A stretch of 64,000 nucleotides of DNA from Ascidiella aspersa (Eukaryota): the NCBI GenBank assembly GCA_963924565.1, contig OZ004612.1, forward strand, positions 12,338,001 to 12,402,000, written 5' to 3'. The notes below the pieces were generated by a model. The model worked only from the letters and a program-made list of their open reading frames with translations. It made no database searches and was not told the origin of the DNA. The position numbers and the translations under genes are program-made. Each line of letters opens with the position of its first letter. Position 1 is the stretch's first letter. This document shows positions 18,229-26,789 of the stretch, piece by piece.

Positions 18229-21200
18229 ATGTCAGTTGGTCACCTGATAACGTCACTGACTGTAGGCATCGTCATCAGCCTTGTTGCCACCGGCGAGGCA
18301 CTATCGCCTCTTGCAAGTAAGTGCCTCTTTCGTGCCCATATCTGGATTTATTGTAGGACGTTTTACTTTTCGTGATTTGTCAAAACAAACGGCCGGTTTT
18401 GAACCTTGAATGTTTTGTTTGTAACACTTGCGATTTAAGGGTAAATGTTTTGTTTTTTACACTTGCAATATATGTTGATCTATTGTAGTGTTTCTCAATT
18501 TTTTTCGTGGCGATTCAAATACTAAGCTTGAGTACAACAGTGAAACCTTGGCGACCCAAATCTTTTTGCTGAAATTGTTGTGAGTAAGCAAAACATAAAA
18601 CATTAGCACAAATAAAATCGAACTAGTATGATCCACGACAGCAGAATAGCGTTGAAAATCTAGCTTAACTTTCCTGCTGTTACTGGTCAGAAATTCGAAC
18701 AACATTTACGTTGCAAGGGTCAAGGTAATATTAATGTCACATATTCAGTGCAACATAGTATGAGCCATGTCCGTAGCTAAAAGCTAATGAATATTCATCA
18801 AACATTTTTACCATGTAAATTGCATGTAAATTGAGGACCACTGGTTTGAAATCTTAATAACGTAGGATCAATAAAATCTATTTATTGGGTGAAACACAGC
18901 CTTTCTTAGTATAATCATTTGTTTTAACCGGAACTGTATTTTTAAATTGTTTTTTACATCATTAATGCGGCCACATAGGTAGGGGTTTCAAAACATCATA
19001 GTTTATAACTTTTCATATAACGGTTGCATTGAGAGGTGGTGTTACACTTATCTGCAGTTACTAAAACATGCGGTAACGCTTATAATAAAGTCCGTCCCGC
19101 ATATACTGCCTTATGTTATTCAGCATTTTAGGCACATAAGTTCAAGGGTTGGTCAATTATACGTAATTTCTGTAGGGCAAAATCGCAACATTACGTCATC
19201 GATAACATGCTGGCTTGGCCTAGACAAACAATATGGTGGCAAACGTATACGTAGTAATCTTTCAAGATCATGTCAGAAAACCGTGTCTGGTTGGTAAGGG
19301 ATAAAAAGATAAAACGATTAATAAATGTCAATTTGATCAATTAACGCTGCGCTTATCGCTAGCAAAATGCCAGCGTCCGACAGCCCGCCTAAAAATGGCA
19401 AAAAAAGCGCGCGTCTTATGAGACAAAAAAATTCGTGCAGTAAATACAAAACTTGTCATCGAAAAAAGGGCCGGGTTTGAATATTTCCCAACGCGGGAAA
19501 AGGCTCAGTCCCTCATTAAAACGAGGCGGCTTCACGAAAATCGGTCGCATTTGGCCGAGCGGTTCGTCACGAAGCAGAAAAGTGAAATGCGCCGAAGATT
19601 CGTGCTAACGATTGAGGAAGACTGTCCAGGCTTGTTTCCCTTTACCCTGAATTTCGGCCGAAGTTTCAGATCTGTGTTTTTTTAGGTTTAGGGGATTTTT
19701 GTACACGACCTTTTAGGAAGGCAGATTTTGAAACACCTTAAAAATAGGAGAATTTCTCGCTGGCCTGATGTTGGTTATTTGGTTAAGGAGTGTTTTTTAG
19801 TGGTCATAAAAGTGTTTGGTTTTTAGTACAACGTAAAATTCAAATTACGTTTAAATACGCGGTACCTAACAATCTATAAGAACACTATTTTTAACCGTTG
19901 GCAATTTTAGCTTAATTCAATTTGAAAGAAAATCTATAAAAGACTAAATGTGTTTTAAAGTTTTTTTTCTACGCCCTTCTTTAAAAAGACAGTTGTAAGT
20001 GCTACATATTAAAACAAATCAACCATTATTATAAATTGTTTTTCGCACTAAAATAGAAATACACAAAAAAATATATTTTGTGATTTTACAGAGCAATTCA
20101 GTTTGCGCAGCGGGCCTATTGCATAACGGTCGCCAAAAGCCGCATAAATAACCCCTTTAAGCTGGTCGTGCAGCCCCCACCAGGAAGGTCTCGTCGTTTG
20201 TTGCAAAACAAACTGTGCGCCATATCGTTGTGCGACGTTTTCACTTTTCCGGGCGAAAAGCATAAAAAAGAAGAAGCGCGCGGATCACGATTCGACTCCC
20301 TCCGTTGGGGACAAGGGGCGTGGGTTTGCAAAACACGAACTCCGAACGCAATAAGACATCTTTGGCCTATGCGGCAAAGTAGCCGGAACATGGGCGCGTA
20401 TTTAGCACGGTTCGACTACTTCACAAACCGCGTTTTAATTGTTGTATCTAAATGCAAGCAGCACTGAAATTTGCTGCCGGAGTGGAAAGTTACGGGAGCT
20501 TCGGCGATTTTTTTCCGCGTTGCCTCTCTTGTCCTTGTTAACGGCAGCTGTGTTGAGGCTGGCGGCGGAAAAAAAGGGATTTGAAGAAAACCGATGTCGG
20601 GCGTTTGCCCAGCTCGCAAAGCCTTAATGAGCCGTTGCTCATTCAGTGAGATGAGCTTGCTCGCCGAAGGGCGATATTCGACAAAGGGTCAGGTCAAGTT
20701 AAGAGTAATTTTGTTTACTTTTCACTTAGGCGTGTACATCTGTACGTCGAAGGCAATTTAAAGCTTTGCTTTCGGAAAGATAAAATGATGAATCGCATGG
20801 GCTTAAAGACTTATATAGGCCGAGATAAACGCAATAAATGGGAGATCGCAGGCGAATTGCAAAGGCAACTCGAATCGGAAGTAAAGCACTAAGAAAATAT
20901 TTTATTGTCCAACGAGGAAGTTAAGTGCTTCAGCAAAGAACTGAAGGCTTGACTTTATATAATTCATCCAGGAAAAGTAACCAAGAGTACTTTAAAAAAA
21001 AAAATTAAATCGTTAAGAGTGTTGCGTTCAAAAACATGGACTGAACGTATTTTTGTTTTATTTTTAGTATTAATAAAAACAGAAAAACGAGAATCTTGTT
21101 TATTACAAAAAAAAAACTTGAAACCAAAGCTATTCCGCTGCTAGCTGCATAGAGTGAACTTGCACATAACCGGAAGTCAAAATTAAAAAAAAAACGCAAG

Positions 21201-24200
21201 AGCAAGAAACAAGAAGGCAACAACACGATGAAGGTCGCGACGGCGCAACTCGCAGTTTTCGGTGAGTTTTCGACGCCCAGGAGAAAATAAAAAAAAATTA
21301 CGCAACACAAGAACGAAAAGGCGTTAATCGCGCGGGGGCAATTATCGCGCAAACTTCTCCCACGAAAAACCGAAGTGGCGGCCGCAGACTGAAGGGCGCG
21401 GACTCCGCCTCTCTTTCGACTAGAATTTTGAGCACCGCGAGCATTGGGCGGAGTCTGCAGCCGGCGATTACCGCGGTTTACTGGTGCGCCAATTACGCCG
21501 CTAAAACGCCGGGTTCCTTACGAGCACTAGCCGACGACGACCCGACGGTGGCCAGTCACCTTTTGGCATAAACATTTTTTGGGCATAAAAGTGAATTAAA
21601 AACTTTTTTTTTGTTGGTATAGTTGTTAGTTTGGCAGATAATGGTTCCTTATTGAAGTCAATGTGACTCCGTTTTACCGTTACGCAGGTCACGGACGCGC
21701 GCGAGACAACAGAAATCCTTGTATATACATATAAATATATAAGACAACGGTTTAGGAAAGTAACACTCCTCATTGTAGGTTTGAGCTAAGAATATATGCA
21801 TATAAAGCAATGGCCATTTTGTCCAAGTTTATCCTACAAAATAACTGCAGTGGCACTTCCAATGTGAACAGTTTTAGCAAAATACTCGTTTAAGAAAACA
21901 TAAGAGTTTATTTTAGGCTTTTAGTTAGTCATCTATACCGGCATGAATTTCAACGCATTTTTATAAATAAAACCTCAAACGTTGTATTTTTTCGCAGCAT
22001 TGCTTCTCTTGTACCGCGGCTCGACTGGCAACCGCATGGTTCCGAGGCGTGTACTGCAGGGCCGAGCGGCGCCGGCGCCAAAGCCAAGGGGCTGGGCCGA
22101 CTGGGGCGCCTGGACGCCGTGCAGCACCGACAGCGTGGAGGGGGGCGTGCGCGCCAGAAGCCGCACTTGTCACGAGGAGCAGTGCGACAATTTGGCCGGC
22201 GACAATTACGAAGTGCAGACTTGCACGCACAAAGGTGAGACGTCTGGCCTGACAGCTTAGTTTTCAAATATACTAGATTTTTGTGCGATGTTGTGAAAAT
22301 GAGTGCGATGTTGTGAAAATGTCGAATGCGGTACAATAAAAAAATGAAAATAAGAAATTAATAAATTGTTCGAATTAAGATATACTGACGATGCCTTTGC
22401 TGGTAAAATATATACATATATATCTTTTAAGATCTTTTAATAGTTTCTGTCCTAAATTGCTAGCTTTGCTAGAGTTTTCTGCTGTTACTGATCAGGGATT
22501 AAGGTCGACATTTATCTTGCAAGGGTCAAGGTGATTTTTCATATAACATATTCAGTGCGATAAAACAAACGCAGATTTTTCTTACTCTATTGAATCGCGT
22601 TTCGTTAGTTGCGTCTTCAGACCGCACAATCGCAAAGCAATTCTGTAGTCATTTTTACTTTCGAAAAATGTCTTCTTCAATTCAGGTAAAAGTCTGCCGT
22701 ATAACTTGTGACCAAATTATTTCTTTGTATACAAGTCGAAACCTCGTCCAGTCTGAATGCGATTTTTAACCCTTGTTGCTTTTCAGCTCCCGAGGGACAA
22801 ACCCGTAACGACGCGATGAGCGACTTATGCATTAACGACCCAACAATGCGGGACTCCATGTCGTGCAAGCTATACATGGAGAACGCCACCATGGCTTACG
22901 ACATCTACTTCAGCACCGGGTACATGCTTGTTTTTAGTACATCGCCAAAATTAAAAACTGTCTAATTTGTGCAGTTTGAAAGGATACTTTGATAGCCGCC
23001 AAAAAACAACACGGGTTATATACTTATTTATAGGTGTTTTAAAAATGTCAAATTATACAACAAAATTATCAGCGGTGCTCATTCGGTCAATCAATGTAGC
23101 ACTTATTACTCACTGACTTATTTTTCAAATGAACTACAGCGGATATTGGTTCATAGAACTTCTCGGGTTTAGGCACAATTGCTTCCATTGTGTCTTGGCG
23201 AATGTAAATCGGGTTCTATATGTAAATAGGAACCAGACAGCGGCTTTAGGGCAAATTTATATGCAACCTAGAACATCGCACTTATTCAGGGGAAAAATCG
23301 AGAAGGCGTCGCCAACCGGATCAACTATTTTATTATATGGAAACGGCAATTTTAATTGAGTGCGACGAGACACAGAAAGAGCAGTCCAATTTGCATAGTT
23401 AGCAAACATAAAATTCCACTTGCGTTCGGAGCCCGTGTAACGCTGCTCAAGCGCGATTAACTGCAATATGTATGCAAAACCCTGCGCTGATCTCCCCGCC
23501 TGTCGAAGTCAAATTTGCGTTTATAAATCAAATTAAATGGCAACGCGAGTTCGAATTTCAAACAATAACAAGGAACGTTCAAACAATAACAACAAGTGAC
23601 CTTCGCAGATGCCTGCTGGCTATTTTGGACGACGTCAACTCGGAAAACGAGGCGGAATCCGACTTGGTTTTCGGGAGGGAACCGGACCCCGAACTGGGGG
23701 AGAGGGGCGCCTTGTTCCAAGGCGACCTTGTGACGTCAGACCTGAGCTCGGGAAAGTTTACGGGCGGCGCCGTCTCGCCCAATCCGGTGCCGCCGGGCCA
23801 GCGGGACCAGAACAACCGACAGGCCAACTCGGGCGTGAGCGGACTTTTCAACGTGTTAGCGACCAACAACGTGTGCACAGGTACTTTGAGATTTCTAAAA
23901 CTTGCCACGGCCGGTATAATAAACACAGAAACACAGCTAGACGAAGGTACAAAATAAATGGACTTAACCATTTTGATGCATCAATAAGGCTTGATATTTA
24001 ATTTAACATATTAAAATAAAAAGTGTCGCGTTATAGAGTAGGGTAGAACAATGGCATCAAGAAATTAAATGTCTAAAACTTAAAGTTGCCACAGCAAAAC
24101 AGCTAGGCGAACTTACAAATAAAATAGAGGTTTTTGATGGGTCAATAAGGCTTCGTGTTTGGGAGTAAAACATTAAAATGAAAAGTGTGGTGTTATAGAG

Positions 24201-26789
24201 TAGGTAGAACAACGGAATGAACAAATTAGAGTTTTTTTAACTTTTGCCATTTTTTGTCTCAGAAACGACACTATATATCAACAACAAAAATGTCAGACAA
24301 AATCTTTTTTTTTTTTAAGTGCGTTAAAACAGGTACACCTTGCATTGCATTATTAAAACATGGGCTTGCTACCATTTTCGGCCCCCGGGTATTTTTCTGA
24401 ACCTAACAGTAATTCGGGCAGAAATTACGGTAGCAACAAAGCGAGAACGAAAGCCTTAAAACGCCTCCTTTCGATTTACAGACGTTTGTCAGAGGATCAT
24501 TGTAAGCGCCACTGGTATTTCGTCATTCGGCAGTAACGCTCCTAACTCGGTCAACGGCATCGTGGCCCTACTCGCATCCAACTCTCTTTTCAGAGGAAAC
24601 ACGGCGGCCATTCAAAACGAGTACGCGAGCTGTACGCTCGAATGCAGGTGAGAACATCTCGGCAGAAGAAATAAACTTATGATTGTCACGCGAATGGAAA
24701 CGATTTTTTTCTGTTTTTTTTTAAGACTATTTTCGACAGTTGTTCGGCGCTTTTAAAATATGTTTATTTTGAATCAATTTGGATAAAGGTTTCGATTGTT
24801 TTTACTTTTAAAAATCCGTTTGCGATCTTACGGGTTATTTTAAACACAAAAAGCTGTGGTATTTTAAACATATTTCGACTGTGGGATTTTAAACAATCTT
24901 GACCAAGTTCCAACTGGTGAATTACCACAACCGTATAACAGACGATGACAATAACAAAGTACATTTTAAAATTAATCCTATAGTTCGCTTTCGAACATGA
25001 TTTCTAACTCACTTCGCGTTTTTTCCAGATTGTTCGGGCCGCAGTACGCCACCGCCCGTCTGGGTCTGGCCAGCCAGGGCCAGGACCGCGCTTTCAGCAA
25101 TGGCCTGCGTGTCACCCTTAACGTGGGGGAGGGCACCGGGTCTGGACGTCGTCGGCGCCGCCGCGCCCTGCCGCTCCTTGTTAACCGAATGCTGGAGCTG
25201 ACTCCGGAGCAATCCGAAGAGCTACAACATGCGCTTATGAACGCCGAAAATGACGACAGCGCGCCACCTAGCGTCAATGCGGGCTTAGAAGAAAAGCCGG
25301 TAGGTGGCGACGAGTTCGCTCCGGAGTCGCAAAGCGACAAAGAGGACGGTTTCCCGACTTTCAGGCGCCGCGTCAAAGCGCCGCAGCGTCTTATGGACCG
25401 AGTCGCCGCGGTCGGGAAGAAGAGAAAGCCGGTTGCTCCTCCACGTCCGGAGGAGAGGATCGTTGAAGAGCAGGAGAACGTTACCGCAGTCCTGGAGAGG
25501 GCCAAGAGGCAGGCGCCGCCAACTTCCGACCCGAGCAGCTACACGAACCCGTGCTTCGTACGCGAGGAGTTCTCCCGCAGTCCGCGGGTCACCAATGTGG
25601 ACGGAACACAGGGCGAGCTGTTCTTCTTCGAAACCAAGAGCCAGGTAATTTGACGCGCTTAAAGTGTTTGCTTATTCGTATTAAAACGTAAGGGTTTTGC
25701 GAAACAGGATTTGCAAGCTATGTGTTGTGGCAAGCCAAACGATTCTGTTGCTTGTTAGCTGAAAAGTGTCAATCAAAAGTTACACTAAGTACAAAAGCAA
25801 ATTGACAAAATTTACTAAGTTCTGTACTTTTTTACTAAGTTCTGTACCTTTTTACCAAGTTCTGTAGTTCTGTACCAGTTTAATCTTTATCATTGATGTG
25901 CAACCATAATCGTTTGTTTTCACCATTCGGATTCAGGCAAATTCTGTTAACCAAACAAAACTATGATTAAGTGTCAATCAATTGCGATAGTGTCCATCCA
26001 TTATAAATATGACTGATAAATAATCTTAGAGCGCTTGCACATAGTTCACGGTTCACAATTTGAAACAGTTCGCGCGGCGTCGAAAATATTCAAGAGAAAT
26101 AACAACGATTTCCCTTTTTCGCAGCGCTTTTTAAGGCGGCGTTGCCAGGGACCGGAAATCGTCCGCGGCTCCCTCTACCAGCCCAAGGAGACGCTGACGC
26201 AGGAGAGGACGAAGCAGCAGGCCGTTTGCAAGCAGGGATACCTAAAGCGATTCGGCCTCATGATATTCTACGACCCTGAGGTGAGCTCAATTGCCATGTA
26301 ATTAAACTAGTTTTTCAAAGTGATGTCAGTTTATTGTAGCCAATTTGGTAGCAGAAATCAATATACGATGTATTCAGTTGCGCTGTGCAGCCGTTATTGA
26401 AACATAATTACCATTCTTTTAGGATACTTAAGGGGTTATATTGCCACCTATAAATAGTACGCCACAAATATTTCTCTACACTGATACAGAAACCTATCGC
26501 GCTTTACATCTTTGAACAAACAAACCAATCGTAGATACCCATGTAGTTTTAACACGAAATCTACACAAAAATATTCAATTCGGGCTTTGCGAACTTATCT
26601 GGTTCGACATAAAATCCTTGTAAAATGGCGATAGGAACAAGTAAGGTGCTAATTTAAGCTTTTATCAAACCATAACTTTGTTGTTTGTTCCAGGGCGAGT
26701 ACGCATTCAGCGACGGATCGCGATTCTCGGTCAAACTGAGGCAGTTCAAGCTGGAATCGCACTGCGAGATCACGGTCGCGTCGCCGTAG
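18229..26789 (+). CDS. Secreted precursor, 587 aa: signal peptide, TSP1 domain, Cys-rich domain, furin sites, Spaetzle-like cystine-knot domain
   Basis: Eight GT-AG exons with consistent phase: 18229-18316, 21998-22234, 22787-22919, 23609-23880, 24482-24647, 25029-25644, 26125-26280, 26694-26789 (1764 nt, ends TAG). N-terminus MSVGHLITSLTVGIVISLVATGEA is signal-peptide-like. WADWGAWTPCS...RARSRTC...C...EVQTC is a TSP1 motif. RRRRRR and RAKR are convertase sites. The C-terminal PC...SQRFLRRRC...VCKQGY...QFKLESHC matches the Spaetzle pattern. AATAAA at ~27514. Confidence 0.85.
18640..18760. repeat. Degenerate copy of the dispersed repeat family (intron 1)
   Basis: CTGCTGTTACTGGTCAG...TTGCAAGGGTCAAGGT...CACATATTCAGTGC matches 22480-22558 and the reverse complement of 15660-15740. 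Confidence 0.6.
22425..22560. repeat. Copy of the dispersed repeat family (intron 2)
   Basis: TTGCTAGCTTTGCTAGAGTTTTCTGCTGTTACTGATCAG...CTTGCAAGGGTCAAGGTGATTT is the reverse complement of the element at 15660-15765. Confidence 0.7.
23893..24230. repeat. Degenerate two-copy tandem repeat (~165-175 bp unit) in an intron
   Basis: TCAATAAGGCTT...ATTAAAAT(A/G)AAAAGTGT..GTTATAGAGTAGG(G)TAGAACAA occurs at ~23981-24052 and again at ~24142-24212. Confidence 0.6.

Follow-up and report, generated by a model that had tools for sequence, protein, structure and literature searches.

Does the sea squirt Ascidiella aspersa encode a secreted ligand of the Spaetzle/neurotrophin kind in a form that lacks part of the cystine knot? 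The question is raised by three coding stretches, 25495-25644, 26125-26280 and 26694-26789, within a 64,000-nucleotide window of its genome (the whole stretch of eukaryotic DNA that was analysed, to whose positions all coordinates refer; ~40% G+C, with the exons richer). A reading made from these letters alone, here called the sequence-only reading, had proposed that they are spliced into a furin-released domain resembling Drosophila Spaetzle. We find that they form the 3' part of exon 6, exon 7 and exon 8 of an eight-exon gene that is orthologous to LOC100179307 of Ciona intestinalis and LOC143462054 of Clavelina lepadiformis, and we consider that its product is probably released by a convertase and belongs, as a divergent member without the ring disulfide, to the Spaetzle/neurotrophin superfamily.

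Reading upstream of the 25495-26789 stretch and checking the reading phases gave a model of eight exons on the + strand (18229-26789), whose 1764 nucleotides hold 587 codons and a stop, with the frame kept throughout and no internal stops. The three stretches that encode the C-terminal domain translate as ERAKRQAPPTSDPSSYTNPCFVREEFSRSPRVTNVDGTQGELFFFETKSQ (ERAKRQAPP...FFFETKSQ), RFLRRRCQGPE...AVCKQGYLKRFGLMIFYDPE (ending MIFYDPE) and, directly before the stop codon, GEYAFSDGSRFSVKLRQFKLESHCEITVASP (GEYAFSDG...ESHCEITVASP). The last two introns are both phase 0 with canonical GT-AG ends, good GT donors and pyrimidine-rich AG acceptors (AGCCAG/GTAATT, TTTTTCGCAG/CGC, CCTGAG/GTGAGC and GTTCCAG/GGC, the slash marking the junction), and the spliced ERAKR plus 128-residue domain spread over three exons is exactly as first described in both its translations and its splice sites. 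As judged from the sequence, the precursor begins with a signal peptide, followed by a single TSP1 repeat, a helical pro-region with cysteines, two convertase sites and the C-terminal domain; the repeat in exon 2 matched Pfam TSP_1 with an E-value of 2.1e-6 and 28.3 bits, over the cut-off. A genome search found the gene in single copy. Between exons 3 and 4 lies an open stretch with three cysteines on the + strand (23412-23470; TCVRSPCNAAQARLTAIC), which is not needed by the frame-consistent model, corresponds to nothing in the proteins of Ciona and Clavelina and is probably intronic.

With exon 6 as the query, HMMER found just 8 matches among 1.84 billion representative proteins (best phmmer E-value 3.9e-11), two of them full length: P0001, the 582-residue product of Clavelina LOC143462054, and P0002, the 479-residue product of Ciona LOC100179307, both annotated as uncharacterized. 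When the exons of the window were aligned one by one, every exon fell in order on both proteins, with scores 14-27 standard deviations over those of shuffled exons. The domain pieces of exons 6, 7 and 8 occupy residues 462-499, 500-551 and 552-579 of the Clavelina protein without gap or overlap, and likewise consecutive residues of the Ciona protein. At both proposed junctions, 25644/26125 and 26280/26694, residues that are neighbours in the two database proteins are thus brought together, which provides independent support for the splice model. In the mature domain the window is identical to Clavelina at 66/118 residues (56%) and to Ciona at 56/116 (48%), compared with only 38/162 (23%) between the exon-6 pro-region and Clavelina; the mature domain and the TSP1 repeat are the best conserved parts of the precursor.

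The other matches (P0003-P0008, with P0013 from a profile search) are single open reading frame fragments from unannotated ENA/JGI contigs. All seven end a few residues past the motif ...GELFF[FY]EG..Q-V, in which the GT is read through as valine, and because they run into this GT an intron would lie at the same phase-0 place as the first intron that interrupts the domain in the window. They share NPD-x-[YF]-x-SPC[FY]E...NPRVLNLD...GELFF[FY]EG..Q, and some also the pro-region motif LYARRPGV, and could represent this gene family in other animals. A homologue search with the Ciona domain returned that protein only, and the fragment-profile search gave 5 matches, one of them a new fragment.

The second of the two convertase-type sites stands directly before the domain, in the place where the sequence-only reading had put a furin site. 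Its motif is invariant in the 3 full-length proteins and the 7 partial homologues, all 10 aligned sequences having R-x-[KR]-R in this place (P0013 reads RRKRQ; the motif is likewise invariant in the fragment alignment) and Gln directly after it in 9/11 sequences. Counted from the Gln at 25510, the mature domain would comprise 45+52+31 = 128 residues, or ~14 kDa. It contains exactly four cysteines, at positions 15, 52, 80 and 121. Their spacing, C-36-C-27-C-40-C, is identical in Ascidiella aspersa, Ciona and Clavelina, and the domain has no further cysteine in any of the three. Because this identical spacing is found in three full-length proteins and is joined by signs of selection, the four-cysteine state is, as far as the sequences tell, a conserved condition in three sea-squirt species and not decay, in agreement with what the sequence-only reading had suggested.

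The knot of Spaetzle is built from six cysteines (I-IV, II-V and III-VI), with an inter-chain cysteine besides in Spz itself. The four cysteines of the domain fall short of this set, and equally of the six-cysteine set of the neurotrophins with its C-x-C, the last strand reading H-C-E-I, H-C-E-L and H-C-A-L across the three species. Compared with the sequences of Spaetzle and NGF, on which the mapping rests, the pattern fits a tentative assignment of Cys-1 to I, Cys-2 to II, Cys-3 to IV and Cys-4 to V, with III and VI absent and the dimer cysteine replaced by His. No cysteine lies in the stretch from II to IV, and C-E-I takes the place that C-x-C has in the last strand of NGF and Spz; in exon 8 a His (26760-26762) directly precedes Cys-4, and Ile (26769-26771) occupies the place where C-x-C would put its second cysteine. 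Should the mapping hold, III-VI, one of the two ring-forming bridges, would be the pair that was lost and the knot would therefore be open, with I-IV and II-V left to hold the strands together.

What fold the domain adopts was approached through the ESM Atlas with residues 455-582 of the Clavelina protein. By features, two arthropod Spaetzle clusters were the nearest of the named ones, scoring 0.89 (188/256 shared features) and 0.88; next came a chordate NGF/Spaetzle cluster at 0.86. The named families lower in this search were IL17, Noggin, NGF and BDNF, all within the same cystine-knot group, and the nine feature rows shown comprised Spaetzle, NGF, IL17, Noggin and one unnamed cluster. The Atlas's own model of the same stretch aligned with a Spz cluster at a template modelling (TM) score of 0.68 (105 residues aligned) and with NGF-related, beta-NGF and NT-4 clusters at 0.65, 0.62 and 0.58, and every structure row that carried a family name was Spz or NGF. 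From these features and models a Spaetzle/NGF-superfamily fold appears reasonably likely for the domain. We place it no higher because the Atlas score is <0.9, the models compared are predictions on both sides, the stretch is short and the look-up with the Ciona domain gave noise.

Several results weigh against this assignment. The Atlas feature score of 0.89 falls under the tool's line of 0.9 and counts as a lead only; the TM scores compare two predicted models over a 128-residue stretch and are weak, the whole-protein Atlas model having a predicted local distance difference test (pLDDT) value of 0.44. The same kind of feature search, run on the Ciona domain with all clusters included, yielded only noise, at 0.83 to bacterial proteins. 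The Pfam families Spaetzle, NGF and IL17 missed the exons, the locus and P0001, P0002, P0010 and P0012 even at E<=10 (the family cut-off being 27 bits for Spaetzle, PF16077, and NGF, PF00243), and six-frame genome scans with the three families do not list this locus; the best Spaetzle match elsewhere in the genome (L001) contains stops and was discarded as noise. PDB searches with phmmer and with a profile gave nothing for the domain, the only row of the profile search being an insignificant HIN-domain one. In two AlphaFold runs on the full-length orthologues, made from shallow alignments of 11-14 sequences, the domain had pLDDT values of 25-70 in both models; at this low confidence it was all-beta with nine strands and no helix in Clavelina, and had four short strands and one helix in Ciona. 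Foldseek and VIA-align searches with both models found no NGF or Spz match for the domain. A homodimer prediction for two copies of P0002 352-479 scored 0.00 with the partner fold uncertain, and counts neither way. The Spaetzle-like identity put forward by the sequence-only reading therefore stands as a lead, from the Atlas features and models, and is not carried by the Pfam families or by the AlphaFold and Foldseek comparisons.

The same results feed the most serious competing explanation, that the gene encodes a tunicate-specific secreted pro-protein (a hormone, matrix or tunic protein) with a beta-rich two-disulfide fold of its own, whose likeness to Spaetzle and NGF in cysteine spacing, in the motifs FFET and FKLES-C and in pro-protein layout is convergent or due to chance. 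The lack of any hidden Markov model or PDB sequence match, the noise-level Atlas result for the Ciona domain, the low-confidence folds without structural match and the small number of homologues (8 in 1.84 billion representatives, 5 in the profile search) would all be in keeping with it. A random beta-rich domain would, however, be expected to draw mixed families, whereas the named Atlas structure rows are all Spz or NGF and the feature rows belong to one cystine-knot clan plus one unnamed cluster; moreover, the order of signal peptide, pro-region, R-x-K-R and ~125-residue C-terminal domain is that of the neurotrophins. We consider this explanation possible but clearly the less likely one.

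It seems improbable that the domain is to be placed in a different branch of cystine-knot cytokines (IL-17, Trunk or PTTH), for example as a surviving T1C-type IL-17 relative without Cys 3/6 that acts on an IL-17 receptor. Invertebrate IL-17s of type T1C show the same loss of Cys 3/6 (PMC11087794), and clusters containing IL17 come further down the Atlas ranking, with 0.86 and 0.81. Against this, Spaetzle and NGF outrank IL17 by both Atlas features and structure, Pfam IL17 (PF06083) matches seven loci in the genome at 46-62 bits, none of them this one, and hhalign of the family against four of the genome's IL-17 exons gave a probability of 0.14%; T1-type IL-17s are, in addition, lost in tunicates (PMC11087794). 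On the Pfam and hhalign results an IL-17 identity was rejected. That we are dealing with a non-working gene, a pseudogene or mis-joined open reading frames, is very improbable: its product is not among the database proteins and the best match is 30% identical, but eight exons join in frame over 1764 nucleotides with canonical sites and no stops, all are colinear with two RefSeq/GenBank models, and the convertase site and cysteines are conserved.

The genome holds at least 7 clear IL-17 domain loci (including L006, L007 and L010-L012). Three copies with identical scores lie at ~16 kb spacing at G000:C3:22170745-22202946, and an inverted pair 7.5 kb apart lies at G000:C5:17721186-17728911. The genome's only match to the FerI (ferlin) domain is at G000:C9:7257167-7257256, and a scan for open reading frames in the 120 kb around it found no obvious NGF-like nested gene.

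Table 1. Exons and protein features of the gene, in window positions
Feature	Position	Strand	Remarks
Exon 1	18229-18316	+	Carries the ATG and encodes the signal peptide (MSVGHLITSLTVGIVISLVATGEA...); phase 1 at its end; donor GCAA/GTAAGT; hydrophobic N-terminus matches those of P0001 and P0002
Exon 2	21998-22234	+	One TSP1 repeat (~22099-22230); splice sites read; aligns to P0001 52-102
Exon 3	22787-22919	+	Part of pro-region, 2 Cys; aligns to P0002 105-146; phase 1 in, 2 out
Exon 4	23609-23880	+	Pro-region, acidic, Gly/Pro-rich; aligns to P0001 150-242
Exon 5	24482-24647	+	Twin C-x3-C helical hairpin, jointly with the end of exon 4; aligns to P0002 236-289
Exon 6	25029-25644	+	Remaining pro-region and mature-domain residues 1-45
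First convertase-type site, RRRRRR	25147-25164	+	Coincides with RKKR of Ciona and RRRRR of Clavelina
Second convertase site, R-A-K-R	25498-25509	+	Cleavage expected, on sequence grounds, before Q at 25510
Mature domain, part 1	25510-25644	+	Residues 1-45; Cys-1 at 25552-25554; motif GELFFFETKSQ
Exon 7	26125-26280	+	Mature-domain residues 46-97; Cys-2 at 26143-26145, Cys-3 at 26227-26229; 27/52 residues identical to Clavelina
Exon 8	26694-26789	+	Mature-domain residues 98-128 and TAG stop; Cys-4 at 26763-26765

The pro-region has features of its own. A pair of C-x3-C motifs, C-T-D-V-C...C-T-L-E-C (23870-23880 and 24482-24647), is kept in Ciona (CTDIC...CTQEC) and in Clavelina (CESTC...CISQC), and the corresponding part of the Ciona protein (P0002 ~217-307) was modelled by AlphaFold as a long helical hairpin with pLDDT values of ~80-86, no other part of the model being confident. 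For a secreted pro-domain, a helical hairpin stapled by disulfides is unusual. An N-x-T sequon (ENVT; within 25465-25509) lies 8-11 residues upstream of the R-x-K-R, and ENLT, ENVT and NETL are found likewise in P0004, P0005 and P0013. In this the gene resembles the neurotrophins, in whose pro-regions a glycosylation site at about -8 is conserved.

Under the assignment to the Spaetzle/neurotrophin superfamily that we favour, the gene would produce a secreted pro-protein with a signal peptide, a TSP1 repeat, a disulfide-stapled helical pro-region and two proprotein-convertase sites, and cleavage at R-A-K-R/Q in the secretory pathway would free the C-terminal domain. This domain would consist of long beta-hairpins held by two disulfides, Cys15-Cys80 (I-IV) and Cys52-Cys121 (II-V), with the III-VI bridge absent and the ring left unclosed. 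As there is no spare cysteine for a covalent dimer, any dimer would be non-covalent, as in the neurotrophins. The product may act as an extracellular ligand whose activity is gated through removal of the pro-domain, and the pro-part, with its TSP1 repeat and twin C-x3-C helical hairpin, may serve the ligand as a chaperone, a tether or a mask. The obvious candidates for its receptor would be Toll-like or TNFR/p75-like receptors. Loci with TIR domains are present in the genome; a genome search found no Trk-type LRRCT_2 match, which proves little. A bolder proposal, which we regard as speculative and doubtful, is that the protein is the sea-squirt descendant of the ancestral chordate neurotrophin/Spaetzle ligand, that its signal passes not through Trk but through a receptor of the Toll-like or p75/TNFR-like kind, and that it acts as a non-covalent open-knot dimer, which its TSP1 pro-domain keeps latent or matrix-bound until release by a convertase.

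Compared with known ligands, the domain is probably closest to C106 of Drosophila Spaetzle and its family. In both, a C-terminal domain of ~106-130 residues is freed from a pro-protein, as predicted for the present case, and Spz clusters are the nearest in the Atlas by both features and model. The distance between Cys I and II, 37 residues, is presumably equal in the two, and we take the motifs Q-x6-C, C-K-Q-x-Y and F-K-[IL]-x-S-x-C to be common to them. Spz, in contrast, has seven cysteines where this domain has four, without the III-VI ring bridge or the inter-chain cysteine, and is cut by a clip-domain protease (Easter/SPE), whereas the site here is of the furin type, R-x-K-R. Also unlike Spz are the TSP1 repeat in the pro-part, the absence of a Pfam score and the chordate host. 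With the neurotrophins the protein has in common the order of signal peptide, pro-region, R-x-K/R-R and mature domain (~120 residues, here 128), together with the Atlas model scores of 0.65-0.58 to their clusters, and its motif FFETK resembles the FFETKC of NGF. It differs from them in that the cysteine after ETK is a Ser, with Cys-2 following seven residues later, and in the lack of the III-VI bridge and of a Pfam match.

A cystine-knot cytokine that works with two disulfides has a parallel in the incomplete knots of the IL-17s (types T1B, T1C, T2 and T3; PMC11087794). Type T1C lacks exactly Cys 3/6, its four strands are still tied, and it is a known working state (PMC11087794). The present gene differs from these in not being an IL-17, either by Pfam or by hhalign with the genome's own IL-17s. 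If the proposed structure is true, the domain would show that, beyond the IL-17s too, nature has a cystine knot that works in the open state, without the ring-closing III-VI disulfide, and its pro-domain, in which a TSP1 repeat is combined with a twin C-x3-C helical hairpin, would be an unusual one that may control latency.

In the papers searched, those on tunicate immunity and neurobiology included, we found no report of a Spaetzle-type ligand for tunicates, and no mention of the Ciona locus name LOC100179307. Ciona was reported to lack NT, Trk and p75 (PMC2772990), and tunicates are said to lack the neurotrophin/Trk/p75 system (PMC2772990, PMC13663574). Both orthologues of the gene are unnamed. 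A ligand of the proposed kind would matter because sea squirts are usually described as being without such ligands. No living group is more closely related to the vertebrates than the tunicates. If descent from the neurotrophin/Spaetzle ligands is true, they would have kept this ligand family, and a protein with the Spaetzle/NGF fold would be a concrete candidate for an endogenous ligand of orphan tunicate receptors, such as the Toll-like receptors. Since Ciona, a standard laboratory model, has an orthologue, all of this can be put to the test directly.

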